Shown: positions 1 to 54,705 of the stretch, in pieces
How positions within the stretch are numbered: position 1 is the stretch's first letter
Layout: every line of letters starts with the position of its first letter
From: Hemiscyllium ocellatum
Lineage: Eukaryota
Length of the DNA: 64,000 bases
Assembly (NCBI RefSeq): GCF_020745735.1
Contig: NC_083445.1
Coordinates: forward strand, 1,550,001-1,614,000
Direction: 5' to 3'
Notes under the pieces: generated by a model
What the model saw: only the letters and a program-made list of their open reading frames with translations
What the model was told of the DNA's origin: nothing
Database searches by the model: none
Position numbers and translations under genes: made by a program

Positions 1-680
1 GGGTACACTCGCCCACACACACTGACTCTCACTAGAGTACAGCTCAGCTCCCACACACACCGACTATCACTGGGATACAATCCCACACACACCGACTCTC
101 ACTGGGGTACAATCACATACTGTTTCTCGCTGGGTACAATCCAACACACACTGACTCTCACTGGGGTACAATCCCACACATAATGACTCTCATTGTGGTA
201 CAGCTCCCACACACACTGACCCTCACTGGGGTACACTCCCACACACACTGACTCTCACTGGGGTACAGTCCCCACACACTGACTCTCACTGGGGTACAGC
301 TCCCACACACACTGACCCTCACTGGGGTACAGCTCCCACACACACTGACTCTCACTGGGGTACAGCTCCCACACACACTGACCCTCACTGGGGTACAAGG
401 TCCCATACACTGATTCTCAGTGGGGTACAGCTCCCCCACACACTGACCCTCACTGGGGTACAGCTCCCCCACACACTGACCCTCACTGGGGTACAAGGTC
501 CCATACACTGATTCTCAGTGGGGTATATAGACCCCACACACGCATTGACTCTCACTTGGTTATGGGCCCCATAGACACACTGACTCTCACCGGGGTACAA
601 GATCCCACATACGCGCTGACTCTCACTGGGGTACAAACCCCATACACACTGACTCTTACTCTGATACAATCCCTCATGCA
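1..680. repeat. ~33-bp satellite array (CACACACTGACTCTCACTGGGGTACAGCTCC unit), left arm, runs off the window start
   Basis: Directly visible tandem units; they generate the spurious 'CTPVRVSVCGS' ORFs. Confidence 0.95.
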
Positions 681-1163
681 ATGTAATATTAAATGTAATA
701 ACCTGTCAATGTCTCCCCCCACTGCTCCCTGTCCCTTGAGTGTCAGATGAGGCTTTGTCTGCAGTGTGGTCTGTTGTTGGGTGCAAGTTATAATGTGGGG
801 CTGGAAGAACAGTGTCTGTAATGGACTGGACAGACAGGAAATGTCTAATAAGGAAATCTGTTGATGATGTGCTGATGGCCTTACAGTATTGCTCCGAGTT
901 TGCCAAAGAGCAGGCAGCTGGAATGTTTCAGCTATCAGAGGATTAGCTTGGATTAGAAGCTGACACACAGTGACTGTGATGAACAGTATTGACGATTGAT
1001 GAGTCTGTGCCCTGGTGGTTTGCTTTTTGAAAACTTTTTCTAGTTGGATTCCTGAATAACGGCGATGTTTACATTTGCAATTGTTTGCAGCACCCTAAGC
1101 AATGATGATGGGATTGTTTGGCAAACAGTTACATTAAAACCTGCTCGCTCATAAACTCAGCTA

Positions 1164-1935
1164 TGCATGGGGTCTGCACCCCAGTGAGAATTAGGATGTG
1201 TGTGGAGTCAGTGTGTGGGGGAATGTACCCCACTGAGAGTCAGTGTGTGTGGGAGCTGTATCCCAGTGAGGGTCAGTGTGTGTGGGAGCTGTACCCCAGT
1301 GAGGGTCAGTGTGTGTGGGAGTGTACCCCAGAGAGAGTCAGCGTGTGTGGGATTGTACCCCAGTGAGAGTCAGTGTGTGTGGGAGCTGTACCCCAGAGAG
1401 AATCAATGTGTGTGGGAGCTGTCCCCCAGTGAGAGTCAGTGTGTATGTGGGAGTGTACCCCAGAGAGAGTCAGTGTGTATGTGGGAGTGTACCCCAGAGA
1501 GAGTCAGTGTGTGTGGGAGTGTACCCCAGTGAGGGTCAGTGTGTGTGGGACTGTACCCCAGTGAGAGTCAGTGTGTGTGGGAGCTGTACCCCAGTGTGTG
1601 TGGGGGCTGTACCCCAGTGTGAGTCAGTGTGTGTGTGACTGTACCCCAGTGAGGGTCAGTGTGTGTGGGAGTGTACCCCAGTGAGGGTCAGTGTGTGTGG
1701 GAGTGTACCCCAGTGAGAGTCAGTGTGTGTGGGAGCTGTACCCCAGTGTGAGTCAGTGTGTGTGGGAGCTGTACCCCAGTGAGGGTCAGTGTGTGTGGGA
1801 GCTGTACCCCAGTGAGAGTCAGTGTGTGTGGGAGCTGTACCCCAGTGAGGGTCAGTGTGTGTGGGAGTGTACCCCAGTGAGAGTCAGTGTGTGTGAACAT
1901 GTGCTTGTCTGTACCCCAATAAGAGTGATGTGCGC
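1164..1935. repeat. Same ~33-bp satellite in inverted orientation (GGGAGCTGTACCCCAGTGAGAGTCAGTGTGTGT), right arm
   Basis: Unit is the reverse complement of the 1-680 array. Confidence 0.95.
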
Positions 1936-11100: not shown

Positions 11101-14100
11101 ACAGAGTGCAACTCTAGAATGACCCTTTGGTTGGCAGGATTGCCTGATAGAGTCATATAGCACAGAAACAAACCCTTTGGTGCAATCAGTCCATGCTGAC
11201 CATAACCCCAACTAAACAAGTCCCACCTCTCTGCTCCTGGCCCACATCCCTCCAAACTTTTCCTATTCATGTACATAACTAAATATCTTTTAAACATTGT
11301 AACTGTCCCCACCTGCACCATTTCCTCAGGGGAAAGTGAGATTAAAGATCAACAGTTCTCTCATCGTTTGAAAAAAAATGAGTGACTTCATTGAAATTTG
11401 CGAAATTCTTATTGAGAGTGACGAGGGATATGGAGAGGTTGTTTTCCCTGGCTGACGTTCCAGAACCAGGGAATTTACCTGATAAAGGGCAGACCATGTA
11501 TGACTGAGATGAGGAGCAATTCCTTGCTCAGGATACAGTGAGCCTTTAGAATTTGTCACTCCCGAGGGCTGTAATTATTGAGAAGAAATCGGTAGATGTC
11601 TGGACACTCATAACATCAAATGAGATCATCCAAGAAATGAGCAGTGAGAGGGCAAGTGTGAGGGAGAGGGAAGAATGGGAGGAGAGAGGGCAGAGAACGG
11701 ACAGGATGATGCGCTGTCTAGTCCCGATGGGGGTCAGTTTTTAAAGCTGTCAGGTCACAGAGAAAATGTTTCTCCAGAGACAGGTCTCCACTGTGAAAGC
11801 TGCCCTCAATCTGATCCCTCCACACTAACTCAGGGAAAGGCTGCAGTTTATCAGCATTCAACAGCAATGATAAAGAAACACCAACCCACTCACCTTAGAG
11901 CTATGGATGAGACCTTTCTCAGCAAAACATAAGCTTTAGTTACAAAATACAAGTTAACCACCAAGGAACGTATTGCAGGCTGTTGGCAGGTTTAACAGGA
12001 TGACTGCGGACATATTCAGAGGAACCTCGATTATCCGAAAGACATTGGTGGGGACTATTTTGTCAGATATTTGAAAGTTTGGATAACCAAATGCCAGATA
12101 ACACAGTTTAGCCAGGCATCAGGACCTCACAATCTTGCTGAATAATCTGAAATTCAGATAATCGAATGCCAAATAAACAAGGCTCCCCTGTAGACAGAAA
12201 GAGCCTTCTTACCTTCGGTCACGGGGAACCATAATTACAACCGATCCTGCAGAAACCGGACACCAGCATGACACCACAATCTCAGAGTCAATCACCGCAC
12301 AAACATCCCCCTCACAACCAGCACCAGGGACAACCACTACATACCTTTCGGTACATCCTCCCCTTTATCGGCTTTCCCTTTATCCAGCTCGTCATCATTA
12401 TTGTCACTGAAAATCAAACACAACACTTTCAGTAAAATACTTGACAGGTTTACCTCCCCCTCTCCCCGTGACCCCACCCCTGACCCCAGCAAACAGCCAG
12501 ACCCCTCTCCCCGTGACCCCACCCCTGACCCCCAACCCCAGCAAACAGCTGGGCCCCTCTCCCCATGAGACACTGCAATGGGCAGCCAAGAAGCTCCCCC
12601 ACCCCTGCAGTGTCCCCCCGCTCTCTCTCCCCCCCCACCCTGATGCAGTGTCCCCCCGCTCTCTCTCTCCCCCCCCACCCCCACCCTGATGCAGTGTCCC
12701 CCCGCTCTCTCTCTCCCCCCCCACCCCCACCCTGATGCAGTGTCCCCCCGCTCTGTCTCGCCCCCCCCCCCCCCACCACCCCGGTGCAGTGTGCCCCTGC
12801 TCTCTCTCCCCCCCCCCCCCCCCCCCCAACCCCCACCCCATGCAGTGTCCCAGCAGGCTCAATGGAAAAGCTGTAACCCCCGGGGTGGAATCCTCACACC
12901 GATGATCGCAAGTAAAAAAGATTAAATACCTCGATTCATCATCCGAGATATAATCCACTTCCTGCCCTTCGAAATCTCCATCATCACTATCCTCCACAGC
13001 CTCATCGTCAGAACCCTTCCTCTTCTTCCTCTTGGCTCCAGCTGGCCCTTTCTTTGGGGCTTTGGGGTCTTTCTTGGTGTCTCCTGGAGAAGGCAACAGA
13101 AGGGCCACGTTAAACACGGAATCCATGGCGACAGGAATTGGCCGTTTCCTCATCACCCCCCTGGGCCTCGCAAACCTTTACTGGCCTGAGCTTTCAATAA
13201 ATTCCTCTCCTGTTCCCTGGGGAAGGGAATTCCACAGGTTAACAACCCGGAGACAGAGATACTAAATGCTTTCATCTCCATTTTAAAGGGAGGCCTCTTC
13301 CTCGCTGCCCCGAATTTTAGTCAACCCTACAACAGGGAGCACCCTCTGGGTATCCACCCTCCGCAATGACACCCTCCGAGGGAGCCAGTGGCCCAGGGCC
13401 CACACTGTCAGACACTCGCTGAGGGAGCCAGTGGTTCAGAACCCACACTGTTAGACTCTCTCTGAGGGAGCCAGTGATCCAGAACCCACACTGTCAGACA
13501 CTCGCTGAGGGAGCCAGTGATCCAGAACCCACACTGTCAGACTCTCTGTGAGGGAGCCAGAGGCCCAGGGCCCACACTGTCAGACTCTCGCTGAGGGAGC
13601 CAGAGGCCCAGGGCCCACACTGTCAGACTCTCGCTGAGGGAGCCAGTGGCCCAGAATCTCTGCCTCAGTGTAAGAGGTGTTCTGGGGAGACTGGGAATGT
13701 GACATTATCTACATCAGCACAGACTGGGCAGTGGGAGGGAGGAGGAGAAATGGGAAAGTGTCTTTAAACCAGACCATTAGGGTTAATTGTGAAAGTTAAT
13801 TGGAAATGACAATGAGCAATCGAAGTAAAGTGAGAAACGTATGTGAAAAACAGGCTGAATGTATGAACAGGGTGATTTGACAGCGGGCGGGAGGGGGAGC
13901 AACCTGACCTCGGGTATGGGAGGGAACTATCCCCTTGTGCAGTTTATGTTGGGCCACCTGATATTGCTTACCATCTAGTTGCAAGAACTGGAAAAGTGCT
14001 GCAGTTGGAATGAAATGGGGATTCAGCCTGTAACGTTACATTCAGAATCGTATTAATAACAGGGACCATGCTCCACTCATCGGAATTTATCCCAACAGGC

Positions 14101-41870: not shown

Positions 41871-42143
41871 AGAGACTGCAGCAGCCAGAGAAACCCAGCT
41901 AGTCAGAGAATAAACTGTGTATCTCAGGTCAGTAAAGTTAGAATTATAAAAAGTTTCAAGCTGAAGTAGGGGGTTGGTCGAATTTAAGCATGTGAGGCCA
42001 TTGCTGCACTGTGTCTAAGTGAGCGATTTACCTCATGGCAGCCCCTGCACATTCCCCATTTTTAGACAATAATCCAATTCCATCTTCAATCTTAAACTGA
42101 ATCTACCTCCACCGCATTTTCAGCAAGTGTCTTCTAGGTCCTA

Positions 42144-42813
42144 TTGTCACGTGTACCAAGGCGCAGCGAACAGCTTTGTCTCGCGAGCAGTACAGTCAGA
42201 TCACAGAGTTAAGTAGCACAGATAAGTAAATAACAGGTAAACAGCGGCAAAAACAATAACACAGGTACAGGCGAATGTTGAGAGTTTGTGCGTCCATTCA
42301 GTATTCTCACAACAGGAGGGTAGAAACGGTCACAAAACCTGGCTAGTGCATGTGTTCAGGCTCCTGTACCTTCTCCCCGATGGTGGAGGTTGTAGGTAAA
42401 CATTGCCAGGGTGGGGGTGGATCTTTGAGAATGCTGCCGGCCTTTCCTTGACAGTGGGCCTGGCATTCTATAGATAAGAGTTTGGCCTTTGTGATTGTCC
42501 AGGCCAAGTTCACCACTCTCTGTAACCGTCTCCGATCTTGAGTGGTGTGGTTGAACATACCAGGTAGTGATACATCCAGACAGAGTACTCTTGATGGCGC
42601 TCCTAGAAAAGTTAGTAAGGATATTTGCCGCCATACCAAATTTCCTCAGCTGCGTGAGGAAGAAGAGATGTTGGGCCTTTGTAACCAATGTGTCCACATG
42701 AAGAGTCCTGGATGCCCACACCCAGGAACTCCACTCGTTCCACCTCTGTGCCGTTAATGTGTAGGGGTGCATGATTAACATTCTGCCAAAAGTCAATAAT
42801 GAGTTCCTTGGGC
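42144..42813 (-). mobile_element. Rex1/Babar-type LINE 3' fragment
   Basis: Same family as 52499-54705 (KAQHLFFLTQLRKFGM...SGCITTWY...RRRLQRVVN; shared 3'UTR). Confidence 0.85.
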
Positions 42814-48834: not shown

Positions 48835-49300
48835 GCTCCTCACATATATATAACCTCCTCTGGAGGTCTGTAAACACCTCCAGCCACTACATGGCTCCCT
48901 AGGTCTGTAACCTCCTCTGGCCCCTACATATCTCCCTAGCTCTGTAAACACCTCCAGTCTCTATATCCTTCCCTGTGTCCATAAACCCCTCCAGTCCCTA
49001 AAACCCACCCCATCTCTGTAACCTCCCTATGTTTCTTAACACCTCTAGCCCCAACAACCCTTCACTGCACTCATCCCTATCTCTGAAACTTCCTTAAGTT
49101 TCTCCATCCCTCCCTATCACTGTAATCTCCTCCAAGTGTTACAACTCTCTCCATCTTTGAGCCTCCTCCTTCTCCAACCACCCTTCCTACCTTGAAACCT
49201 CTTACAGCCCTTTCTGTCTTTATAACTTCTGGCTTAAGAGCCCTCCCTAGCTCTGTAATGTGCTCCTGCCACAGTATCCAGCCCCATCTCTGTAACTGCA
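48835..49300. repeat. Degenerate ~35-40-bp tandem repeat (CTCTGTAACCTCCTCCAGCCCCTACA...CCT)
   Basis: Recurring TCTGTAA-CCTCC motif. Confidence 0.7.
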
Positions 49301-49754: not shown

Positions 49755-50063
49755 TTAGATTAGACTTACAGTGTGGAAACAGGCCCTTCGGCCCAACAAG
49801 TCCACACCGACCCGCCGAAGCGCAACCCACCCATACCCCTACATTTACCCCTTACCTAACACTACGGGCAATTTAGCTTGGCCAATTCACCTGACCCGCA
49901 CATCTTTGGACTGTGGGAGGAAACCGGAGCACCCGGAGGAAACCCACGCAGACACGGGGAGAACGTGCAAACTCCACACAGTCAGTCGCCTGAGTCGGGA
50001 ATTGAACCCGGGTCTACAGGCGCTGTGAGGCAGCAGTGCTAACCACTGTGCCACCGTGCCGCC
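49755..50063 (-). mobile_element. Full-length young HE1-like SINE
   Basis: GGCGGCACGGTGGCACAGTGGTTAGCAC head with CpGs retained; near-identical to the nested copy at 40371-40598. Confidence 0.92.
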
Positions 50064-50289
50064 GAAGTAACCCAGTGGGTTAGTTAGTGGGTTAGTTATT
50101 ATAGTTGATATAAACTCAGCCTGTCTGATTTGGCCTCATAAAACAATTAACCCATTCCAAATATTAATCTAATTTTCTGAACTGCTTCCAATGCATTTAT
50201 ATCTTTCTATAAGTAAGGTGACCAATGTTATAATTCAGATGTGGTGTCACCAATACCCTGTGTAACTGGACATAAACTCCTTAAATGGA

Positions 50290-50900
50290 AATGTTTGAAG
50301 ATCAATGTGGAGTATGATGAAGTGGGGCGTGAGGGAACCTGGTCCTGGTTCTATGAAGGAGGAAAAACAGTGGGTCCAGAAGTGTGGGAAATAGATCAGT
50401 CACAGCTGAAGGCCCAATCCACCATAGTGGGGGTGAATCTGCAGTTAAAGAAGGACATGTCAGAAGCACTGCAACTGAAGGTGGCCTCATTAGAACAGGA
50501 GAACAGAGACAGAGAAACTGAAAGAAAGAATGGAATGCCAACAGGAGACAGGATGTGAGGAAGTGGAGCTGAGCTGGTTTTGGGAGTCAGTAGGTTTGTA
50601 ACAGGTTATTAGTGGATAGCCTTTTCCTGGAAATAGAGACATAAGTCAAGGAAGGGTCGGATGAGTCAGACATGGATCAGCTGAAAGTGAGAGAAGTTGG
50701 AAGCAAAATTGATCATTTTTTTCCATTTCGGACAAGAGCAGGAAGCAGCAGTGATACAGTTATTGACGTACTGAAGAAAAGGTTATGGGAGGAGCAGGAA
50801 TGGAACAAGAAATGTTTCTCAAACTCCCAAGCATAATATGAGTCCCATGGTCACTCATTGTATTTGCGAGAGGTAAAATAAGTTAAAAAAAAGTTGAAAA
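50290..50900 (-). mobile_element. Highly degenerate Penelope-like RT fragment (similar remnant at ~44320-44740)
   Basis: FLQYVNNCITAAS resembles the FLRYIDDC.GAAS Penelope RT motif. Confidence 0.5.
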
Positions 50901-51323
50901 TGCCTACTTTTGCAAAAAATAGCATTTGAACGGGTCTCTTTCAGCAAACATGGATTTGTGACAGGCAACATCTCAATAATGTTTTCAATAGTTTTGTTAA
51001 TTAACATAACTCATGATTCCGAAAGAGCGGTTTTGGGTCCTGACCCAGTATTAGATAACGTATATTTATGATATCACAATCTGGCCCTTCGGCATGCTTT
51101 AAGTGTATGAAGAGCATCCAGGTGCAAGCATGCTGAAGTACATGGGTCTTAGTCAAGTTGGATCCACTGCCATTTTCAAGAGTCCATGCTCCTGTCACAA
51201 AAAGAGGCCAATTTTGCTGACTATCTGTCTTTAGTGACATTTGCTAATTGAAATATGAGTATTGTCAGGGCACTTTGAGAACTTCCCCTACTTCAAAATT
51301 AGGGCCATGCTATCATTCACAAT

Positions 51324-52140
51324 GGTCAGAGACCCAGGTAGTCTCAGTCAAAACCAGTTTCCCTTATCTTCAGCTTCAATCTTAGCCAACATCTTTGGAG
51401 TAGTGTTTGAACCTGATTCAGAGTGTAGCAACTAATTCCTATTTCATTATTAGTCTTGCTTTTGTAAATAATTACAAAACCTGCAAAATATAAAAGGGAA
51501 CATACTCTTCATGAGCAGTATTTCTGTTAGGAGCTATTAGCTTCTGCCCCAGTAGGAATAAGATTGAGATCGCTCACCTCTCATTGTCAGCATGAACCTT
51601 ACAGCCATTACTTGTAGCTTGATTAGAGCTGAATTATCAGACACCAAAGGGAAATATTCTGACCAATCAGTCCAAACAATCTCCCTGACCAGGATATGAA
51701 ATATTGCATGTTGGTCACCTGGACAGTTAGATCATAACTGTCCAGGTGACCAACATGCAATATTTCATACCCTGGTCAGGGAGATTGTTTGGACTGATTG
51801 GTCAGAATATTTCCCTTTGGTGTCTGATAATTCAGCTCTAATCAAGCTACAAGTAATGGCTGTAAGGTTCATGCTGACAATGAGAGGTGAGCGATCTCAA
51901 TCTTATTCCTACTGGGGCAGAAGCTAATAGCTCCTAACAGAAATACTGCTCATGAAGAGTATGTTCCCTTTTATATTTTGCAGGTTTTGTAATTATTTAC
52001 AAAAGCAAGACTAATAATGAAATAGGAATTAGTTGCTACACTCTGAATCAGGTTCAAACACTACTCCAAAGATGTTGGCTAAGATTGAAGCTGAAGATAA
52101 GGGAAACTGGTTTTGACTGAGACTACCTGGGTCTCTGACC
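51324..52140. repeat. Near-perfect long palindrome: 406-bp arms (51324-51729 / 51735-52140) with a 5-nt spacer
   Basis: Read through by eye; one mismatch seen (51694 vs 51770). Confidence 0.97.
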
Positions 52141-52296
52141 TGAGATCATCAAAGCCCAAAGCCTTACCACAAGATGGTGCTTAATTCCATCTGCAAATAA
52201 CAGAATTAAGTTTATGTACACATTCATCCATATTCGACAAGAGTTGCAGATACTAATAGTTTAAAATGAGAAGAGCTGTGACATTGTGAATTTAAA

Positions 52297-52312
52297 TCCA
52301 CCAGGTGGCACC
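52297..52312 (+). promoter_or_regulatory. Candidate CTCF site CCACCAGGTGGCAC
   Basis: Matches the CCASYAGRKGGCRS core consensus; motif evidence only. Confidence 0.45.
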
Positions 52313-52498
52313 CTTTAAATAAGTGTGATCCCGCGCAGTGAGTTTTCTGATGTTTGGCTTTATCAGGACAGAGGCTCCATTCGCTGTTAGGCAGCACAGG
52401 ATGCCTCGGCTCACTTGTGTTCATAATCTAAAGCAAAGTCCACCAGGCTGATGCTCACACTCTTTGGCAAGCTCCAGTCTGCGGACAGTGCCCACGTT

Positions 52499-54705
52499 GA
52501 ATTTAATTTAATTTAATGTCACATGTACCAAGGCACAGTGAAAACCTTTGTCTTGCGAACAATACAGGCAGATCACATTGTTAAGTAGCATAGATAAGTA
52601 AATAAAAGGTAAACAGCGGCAAAAACAAAAACACAGGTACAGACAAATGTTAAGAGTTTGTGAATCCATTCAGTGTTCTAACAACAGTAGGGCAGAAACT
52701 GTTACAAAACCGGTTGGTGCGTGGGTTCAGGCTTCTGTACCTTCGTCCCGATGGTAGAGGTTGTAGGTAAACATTGCCAGGGTGGGAGGGATCTTTGAGA
52801 ATGCTGGCGGCCTTTCTTTGACAGTGGGCCTGGTAGATGGATTCTGTAGATGGGAGGTTGGCCTTTGTGATTGTCCGGGCTGAGTTCACCACTCTCTGTA
52901 ATCGTCTCTGATCTTGAATGGTACATATGTCATACCAGGTAGTGATACCTCCAGACAGAATGCTCTCAATGGTGCACCTATAAAAGTTGGCAAGGATTTT
53001 CACCGTCATGCCAAATTTCCTCAGCTGCCTGAGCAAGAAGAAATGTTGTTGAGCCTTTATAACCAGTGTATCCATATGAAGAGTCCAAGAAAGCTTGTTG
53101 TGGATGCCCACTTTCAGGAGTTTGACACTCTCCACTCATTACACCTCTGTGCTGTTAATGTGTAGGGGGGAATGAGTAACATCCTGCTGAAAGTCAATAA
53201 TGAGTTCCTTGGTTTTGCCGGCATTGAGAGCTAGGTTGTTCTCAGTGCACCATTTTTCCAGGTCTTCCACTTCCTGTCTGTAGTCTGTTTCGTCGCCATC
53301 TGAGATTCGACCGACTATGGTGGTGTCTTCAGCAAACTTGTAAATGGCATTAGTTTGGTATTTGGTGACACAGTTATTGGTATACAGTGAGTACAGTAGG
53401 GGGCTGAGTACTCGCCTCTGGGGGGCTCCAGTGTTGAGTGTTAATAAGGATGAAATATTGTCCTCAGTCTTCACTGATAGTGGCCTGTGGGTCAGGAAAC
53501 TGACGATCCAGTTGCAGAGAGTGGGGCTCAGTCTGAGATCACTAAGTTTAATAATCAGTCTCAAGGGGATAATAGTGTTGAAGGCTGCACTGTAGTTAAT
53601 GAGTAGGATTCTTACATAGCTGTTCTTGATGTCAAGATGTTCTTGGGAGGAATGAAGGGCAAGTGATATGGTATCTGACATGGATCTGTTGGTCCGATAG
53701 GCAAATTGGAGTGGGTCAAGAGTAGTGGGGAGGCTGGAGTTGATTAATGCCATGACCGGCCTTTCAAAGCACTTCATAACCACCGAAATTAGGGCCACTG
53801 GGCGGTAGTCATTGAGACATGTTGCATGAGCCTTCTTCGGCACAGGGATGATGTTGGCCCCATTGAAACAGGCAGGGACTGTGGCCTGCTGCAGGGAGAG
53901 GTTGAAAATGTCAGAGAAGACCTCTGCCAGTTGATCTGTGCATGCTGTGAGTGCACGGCCTGGTACTCCGTCTAGTCCCATCGCTTTCCTTGGATTCACA
54001 CGAAGGAGAACTGATTTGACCTCTGATGCAGTGACTGTTGGGATTGGTTCATCAGGACTTGTCAAAATAGGTGTTACCTCTCCGCCGAAATTCTGCTCAA
54101 AATGAGCATACAATGCCATGAGACAATCTGGGAGGTATATGTCATCATCTGCAATCTTGAACTGTCCCTTTTTAGAGCCTGTGATGTCATTCAGTCCTTG
54201 CCATAGTTGCCATGTGCCTGTCTGGGTCTCTAGTTTGGATCGGTATTGGTCCTTGGCTGTCTTAATGGGTCTGCAAAGGTCATCCTTGGATTCCTTATAT
54301 TTAAGTGAGTCTCCTGATCTGAAGGCCTCACACCTGGTTTTTAGCAGGTTCTGTCTGTCCTGATTCATCCAGGGCTTCCTGTTGGGGAGCATTTCCTCGG
54401 TATGCAATCCTCCACACACTTGCTGATAAAGTTTGTTACAGTGGTAGCGTACTCATCCAAGGTACCTGCAGCCTGTTTGAACATGCCCCAATCAGCTGAT
54501 TCCAGACAGCACCGGAGTTGATCCTCTGCCTCCTCCAACCAGCACTGGACCTGTATCTGTGAGGGGGTCTCCTGCTTGAACTTTTACCTGTAAGCTGGAA
54601 GAAGAAACAAGGCATTGTGGTCGGTGTTCCCAAAATGAGGGTGGGGGATGGAACGGTGGGCATCTTTCGCAGTGGTGTAGCAGTGGTCTAAAATGTTTAA
54701 GCCCC
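52499..54705 (-). mobile_element. Rex1/Babar-clade non-LTR retrotransposon, 5'-truncated ORF2 (RT) with few lesions
   Basis: ORF 53139..54419: KAMGLDGVPG...IIPVPKK...CLNDYRPVALISVVMKCFER...LDPLQFAYR...AFNTIIP...GAPQ..VLSPLLYSLYT...FAEDTTIVG; C-terminus in 52650..53135; (ATTAA)n tail. Confidence 0.92.

Follow-up and report, generated by a model that had tools for sequence, protein, structure and literature searches.

An 817 bp near-perfect palindrome in a shark genome, single-copy and probably formed by a one-off fold-back or template switch

Features of the locus

The window analysed here, a stretch of 64,000 nt of shark DNA, carries a near-perfect palindrome of 817 bp (Table 1). By repeat search and by direct comparison, complementarity between its two arms ends abruptly at either outer end. 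The arms match at 405/406 positions, and the centre of symmetry is T51732. These coordinates confirm what the first-pass annotation had described: arms of 406 bp, a 5 nt spacer and one mismatch. Folded as single-stranded DNA, the palindrome reaches −514 kcal/mol, compared with −89 ± 5 kcal/mol for shuffled sequences (z = −79), so chance is not an issue. The arms are 39% G+C and contain no open reading frame of at least 70 aa. Within the 64 kb window, blastn found no further copy of the arm and an inverted-repeat search found no other palindrome of comparable kind. The outer flanks read ...CACAAT on the left and TGAGAT... on the right, with no repeat between them.

Table 1. Palindrome components and other features of the window (position 1 is the first letter of the window).
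Feature	Position	Strand	Remarks
Left arm	51324..51729	+	406 nt; ancestral in-place template; single-copy, non-coding
Spacer GATCA	51730..51734	.	5 nt; putative fold-back loop, asymmetric
Right arm	51735..52140	-	406 nt; derived inverted copy of 51324-51729; found in organism A only
TG at distal junction	52141..52142	.	2 nt filler, or part of an imperfect 9 nt direct repeat; read from sequence
AGATCAT, first copy of 7 nt direct repeat	51729..51735	+	overlaps arm end, spacer and first base of right arm
AGATCAT, second direct-repeat copy	52143..52149	+	alignment of both relatives' contigs restarts no earlier than 52149
Sole arm-to-arm difference	51694	.	A, with C at 51770 where T is expected
CTCF-like motif (predicted)	52298-52311	+	CCACCAGGTGGCAC
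CR1-like LINE remnant	about 52510-54419	-	3′ end near 52510
RVT_1 ORF of CR1-like LINE	53139-54419	-	Pfam; 426 aa; nearest RT ORF to the palindrome
PF09004 ORF of CR1-like LINE	52650-53135	-	Pfam; LINE ORF2 C-terminal motif
Second copy of CR1-like LINE 3′ part	42142-42708		84.5% identical
End of very high-copy element	about 50000-50063		candidate tRNA-derived SINE, minus strand
37 nt tandem repeat	48864-49021		about 4 copies, 71-78% matches
TFIIF-alpha-domain ORF	12404-13156	-	Pfam profile positions 243-291, E = 7e-9
Open frame of 567 aa	5176-6879	+	G+C-rich; probably not a gene
Two short-tandem-repeat blocks	132-1895		opposite orientation

The sequence AGATCAT occurs at the centre of the palindrome and a second time just past the right arm, from which it is separated by TG, as the first-pass annotation had pointed out; there is no other occurrence between 50000 and 53500. 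The repeat may alternatively be read as a 9-mer matching at 8/9 positions (TTAGATCAT / TGAGATCAT). Because two random 24 nt windows of the 64 kb sequence share a 7-mer with a probability of about 0.023, the direct repeat is suggestive but not decisive.

Pfam searches of the open reading frames neighbouring the palindrome returned only two things: on the right side a CR1-like LINE, and at a considerable distance on the left side an exon with a TFIIF-alpha domain. This exon places GTF2F1, the sole gene identified in the window, on the minus strand about 25–40 kb left of the palindrome. The CR1-like LINE is old, since a contig of one relative (organism C) reaches its edge and a second copy of its 3′ part in the window has diverged to 84.5% identity. 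Its summed contig depth of 1e5–1e6 shows the family to be extremely abundant in all three species. To the right of the palindrome there is also a CTCF-like motif, CCACCAGGTGGCAC, a full match to the core pattern CCASYAGRKGGCRS and the only one in the 64 kb window, against 0.03 expected. The candidate CTCF site noted earlier at 160 bp from the palindrome is therefore real as a motif. This predicted site sits in the ancestral single-copy flank and is present in both relatives.

The window has several other features. Near 50 kb, to the left of the palindrome, one end of an extremely repetitive element is found; its summed depth is about 1e7 in organism A (this shark) and about 3e6 in its relatives. 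The consensus of the loose ends, when reverse-complemented, includes GGTTCAATTCC, a motif resembling a tRNA box B, which suggests that the element is a minus-strand SINE of tRNA origin. A 37 nt tandem repeat is found a little further left. At the far left of the window, two blocks of short tandem repeats face in opposite orientation and form many overlapping inverted pairs, 75–160 nt long, 84–100% complementary and about 0.7–1.5 kb apart. The long open frame listed in Table 1 lies in strongly C-skewed DNA and has no Pfam match; base composition or repeats are the probable reason for it, not a gene.

Representation of the palindrome in sequencing reads

Read evidence was taken from Logan contigs (k = 31) of four public runs, aligned to positions 50000–53400; these are assembled contigs and not single long molecules. 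Two of the runs are from organism A: X1 (sample S1, study P1) and X2 (sample S2, study P2). Each yields three contigs over the locus, with 0–1 differences from the window. In both runs a left-flank contig covers 50038–51353, that is, the flank plus exactly 30 nt of the arm, and an arm contig of 406 nt equals the arm. A right-junction contig (52111–52540 in X1 and 52111–52553 in X2) consists of 30 nt of the arm followed by the right flank. The diagnostic join, from the end of the inverted arm to TGAGATCATCAAAG, is thus present in both samples at full depth.

A true inverted repeat forces a de Bruijn graph of k = 31 to break exactly k−1 letters inside the arm ends. The observed contigs break at just these points and therefore indicate a true inverted repeat. 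The arm contigs have a depth of 54 against 32 for the flanks in X1, and of 38 against about 26 in X2, i.e., 1.5–1.7 times the flanks. At the single mismatch, the left-arm variant is found in the arm contig of X1 and the right-arm variant in that of X2, so reads contain each of the two letters.

The centre of the palindrome is less well covered. A centre contig is absent among the contigs listed and was deduced from the mean depths of bins, which are reproduced exactly in both runs by a 65 nt contig at 51700–51764, comprising the 35 words that touch the spacer. At a depth of 15.2 it reproduces the X1 bins (55.5 and 17.0), and at a depth of 7.2 those of X2 (0.63 and 33.1). Words spanning the centre are accordingly under-represented, at 0.47 (X1) and 0.27 (X2) times flank depth, which may reflect library bias against hairpin-forming fragments. 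Heterozygosity was considered as another source of the low depth. If an empty allele were present as well, the contigs should end at 51727–51729 and at 52143–52149, and they run unbroken through both intervals. Judged in this way from graph topology, heterozygosity is disfavoured and the palindrome appears to be homozygous in the two samples.

The first-pass annotation had raised an assembly or library artefact as an alternative, on the ground that the AGATCAT repeat includes GATC. Such an artefact could stem from ligation at GATC, from an adapter overlooked in a long read, or from a molecule folded back into a chimera. Chimeras of palindromic form are well known from long-read sequencing, and the low depth of the centre-spanning words would also fit an origin of this type. 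Against it, the right junction and the arm-exact breaks recur at full depth in two samples from two studies, the arms are 1.5–1.7 times as deep as the flanks, and unique sequence runs on at either side. Hi-C ligation at GATC was examined separately and rejected: the symmetry centre is off the middle of the GATC, GATCGATC is absent, and the density of GATC sites (7 in 1.9 kb) is as expected. An artefactual origin is highly improbable on this evidence. The first-pass annotation had named a lack of reads across the junctions and halved depth as the marks of an artefact, whereas contigs of two samples cross the junctions and arm depth is raised. The palindrome is real, and is neither an assembly nor a Hi-C artefact.

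Copy number of the arms

At 80% likeness, contig depth over 51026–52393 is 0–55 in organism A and 7–11 in the relatives (four runs in all). The same measure gives 1e5–1e6 over the LINE at 52508–53400 and about 1e7 over the SINE end at 50000–50113, which served as positive controls. The palindrome arm is single-copy and belongs to no repeat family.

Long arms with almost no interior are also the shape of mobile elements that end in long inverted repeats, such as an element of the Foldback type or a MITE made up of two terminal inverted repeats (TIRs). The depth of the arm is that of single-copy DNA in 4/4 runs at 80% likeness, however, and the whole palindrome has no flanking target duplication. 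Two other species, moreover, have the left arm as orthologous host DNA that adjoins the flank without a break. A mobile element of this kind can hardly be credited. The possibility that the arm is a multi-copy MITE TIR, which had been named as an outcome that would overturn the first interpretation, fails on the single-copy depth at 80% likeness together with blastn within the window.

The corresponding site in two relatives

Contigs that bridge the site were found in both relatives. In organism C, a contig of 1969 nt (X17, record 9) aligns to 50178–51727 and then to 52149–52542, on one strand. In organism B, a contig of 3037 nt (X9, record 24) aligns to 50098–51724 and to 52149–52369, likewise on one strand. 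They differ from the window by 3.6–5.8% (about 4% divergence). Neither bridging contig contains the right arm. Since B and C are colinear with the window through the left arm and then skip to 52149, the right arm is the derived copy. Comparison of the three sequences thus identifies the left arm as ancestral host DNA in place, and the right arm as an inverted copy found in the lineage of organism A only. This upholds the earlier proposal that 405 bp of upstream sequence had been templated, in inverted form, next to itself, as the two relatives have the left arm and lack the right one.

The mirror-image arrangement, in which the left arm would be the copy, was considered and rejected. It finds only the 5-mer ATCAT at 51312, with a 7 nt filler and a chance probability of about 0.3, and it is also countered by the colinear alignment of the relatives through the left arm.

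The junction of the empty site did not turn out as foreseen. It had been proposed that the ancestral locus read left arm-AGATCAT-CAAAG and that the inverted copy entered at a staggered break. Between 51727 and 52149, organism C has 25 letters where this model predicted 7, and between 51724 and 52149, organism B has 28 where it predicted 10, an excess of 18 in both relatives. Neither side of the alignment reaches into AGATCAT in B or C. From letter counts and alignment ends, the expectation that related sharks would carry the left arm only was right, and the AGATCAT junction predicted for them was not confirmed. Because the relatives have 25 letters where 7 were predicted, the 7-mer cannot, on the aligned sequences, be read as a clean target-site duplication.

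Two possibilities are seen for the 18 letter excess: about 25 ancestral letters were replaced in A, or B and C share an 18 nt gain. Immediately past the second AGATCAT, the right flank opens with two tandem units of CAAAGCC (52150–52163). A change in copy number of CAAAGCC could explain part of the excess, yet 18 is not a multiple of 7.

The two arms differ at 1/406 positions (0.25%), compared with about 4% between organism A and its relatives. Taken at face value, these figures would make the duplication recent, dating it very roughly to the final tenth of the period after the split, with the wide Poisson error of a single difference. Its true age could be greater if gene conversion has kept the arms alike.

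Origin of the inverted copy

The account that we favour is a germline, DNA-level inverted duplication produced by a one-off fold-back or template switch in the lineage of organism A, after its split from the two relatives; we put its probability at about 80%. The structure, its reality in reads, its single-copy status, its derived state and the identity of the copied arm are established by observation; the chemistry, and any choice between break repair and a switch during replication, we infer. The inverted copy adjoins its template, the arms being 5 nt apart, and the return junction, with only TG between the right arm and AGATCAT, shows little homology or filler. Both are features of fold-back events.

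The event would have begun with a 3′ DNA end just past the left arm, exposed by a double-strand break or belonging to a nascent strand at a stalled fork. By folding back, this end may have engaged the strand it belonged to or the same-sense sister strand, with no more than 1 nt of homology, leaving a loop of 5 nt. Extension of the folded end by about 405 nt, with the upstream sequence as template, would then have produced the inverted copy. The displaced new strand would have been joined to, or realigned with, the downstream side with 0–2 filler bases, beside the 7 nt repeat, and about 25 ancestral letters may have been replaced in the process. The product would be the left arm, GATCA, the inverted copy and the downstream flank, with one substitution gained since.

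Priming by the short hairpin CAGTTA-GATCA-TAACTG, as suggested at first, does not hold, since the right half of that hairpin is itself part of the new copy and so cannot have primed the event. The only pre-existing microhomology that can be assigned at the switch point is T51735 against A51729, a single nucleotide; the 25 letters of the relatives are unaligned there. Break repair and a replication switch would give an identical product and cannot be told apart here, although the TG filler, together with the loss of about 25 ancestral nt, slightly favours break repair. Some points count against a fold-back or template switch. The copy, at 405 nt, is several-fold above the length of typical events of either kind, homology at the fold-back is at most 1 nt, and the relatives have 18 extra letters.

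An enzymatic alternative would start from staggered nicks made by a LINE or Penelope endonuclease, followed by snap-back of the reverse transcriptase, which would copy target DNA instead of element RNA and add TG untemplated at its final jump. Staggered nicks would explain the 7 nt direct repeat, whose chance probability is about 0.02, and the 2 nt filler and near-zero homology at the fold-back would suit a reverse transcriptase that snapped back. The distance to the nearby CR1-like LINE is 370 bp. This LINE is old, however, to judge from the contig of organism C, which enters its edge by about 30 nt, and from copies in the window that are about 85% alike. The alignment ends and letter counts of the relatives, moreover, show no simple single AGATCAT target. 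The palindrome itself holds no retroelement sequence, being made up of single-copy host arms, a 5 nt spacer and a 2 nt filler; contig depth, open reading frames, Rfam and blastn revealed no element 3′ end, reverse transcriptase remnant or hammerhead in the arms or junctions. We regard this route as unlikely. It is distinctly improbable, too, that the palindrome is an 'empty' retrotransposition accident, in which 405 nt of host DNA were snap-back-copied and no element was inserted. If it were one, retroelement enzymes would generate element-free palindromes, and with them potential hairpin-RNA loci, across the shark genome.

Possible function

A transcript of the palindrome would form a near-perfect stem of 406 bp, and the locus might then be a functional source of hairpin RNA (endo-siRNA or miRNA) kept by selection. 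Rfam miRNA models do match the centre of the palindrome, but their scores are far under the gathering thresholds (58 vs. 95, 51 vs. 90, and others) and occur on both strands. The locus is also young and absent from the relatives. Selection for hairpin RNA is accordingly very unlikely. As evidence of a miRNA gene the matches were rejected, sub-gathering hits on both strands being what any perfect hairpin would give; the same Rfam search of the palindrome returned miRNA-shaped matches only and no hammerhead. Words of the palindrome were found in no RNA run, and the value of 0.00 in the two small, probable RNA runs (sample S1) is no proof of silence. The suggestion that the palindrome yields double-stranded RNA, as an endo-siRNA source or ADAR substrate, thus drew no support from these two runs. 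No function is indicated, and the palindrome is most likely a neutral scar.

Significance and comparison with known systems

The locus is a natural one-step inverted duplication of which both states are observed, empty in two relatives and filled in two samples of organism A. It shows that a vertebrate germline can retain, apparently in the homozygous state, an 817 bp near-perfect palindrome with a 5 nt spacer; this is of some interest because such palindromes are regarded as unstable. The kind of event, an accident of DNA repair or replication, is already known; this example is unusually long, at about 405 nt, and the palindrome alone alters no open question.

The palindromic AT-rich repeats of human 11q23 and 22q11 are near-perfect, several hundred bp long and expected to extrude cruciforms. 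The shark palindrome resembles them in all three respects, but its arms, at 39% G+C, set it apart from AT-rich repeats.

Fold-back inverted duplications in humans have short inverted homology at the spacer boundary, and proceed through a dicentric chromosome; the duplications that result are very large and come with deletions at the chromosome end (Hermetz et al. 2014, PLoS Genet, PMC3907307). An intrastrand fold-back at a break and a spacer between the inverted copies are shared with the event proposed here. The shark copy differs from those duplications in being of 0.4 kb and interstitial, with normal sequence beyond it and no dicentric route.

Template-switch mutations can make perfect hairpins in one step (Mönttinen et al. 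2023, PNAS, PMC10710096): for a short distance the growing strand takes itself or the opposite strand as template before switching back, replacing a short stretch. The examples considered here are 28–83 nt long with stems of 30–55 nt. Like these, the shark palindrome is a perfect reverse-complement repeat (bar one letter), replaces a short stretch, is lineage-specific and was detected against relatives. Its stem, at 406 nt, is far longer than those of these examples, and it is known here from DNA alone.

A further parallel is found at double-strand breaks in yeast, where the tail left by resection folds into a hairpin and is extended, after which the displaced strand is ligated to the opposite break end with 0–5 bp of homology (Yu et al. 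2024, NAR, PMC11724301). The local fold-back inversions described in that study mostly insert 5–34 bp, and up to just over 150 bp, and used 10 bp of imperfect inverted homology with a 41 nt loop. The shark copy is longer, at 405 nt, with at most 1 nt of homology and a loop of 5 nt; and whereas the yeast breaks were induced, the shark event is germline, apparently homozygous and in a vertebrate. The two have in common an inverted copy lying beside its template, a short loop, synthesis that would start from a folded-back 3′ tail, and a join that uses little homology.
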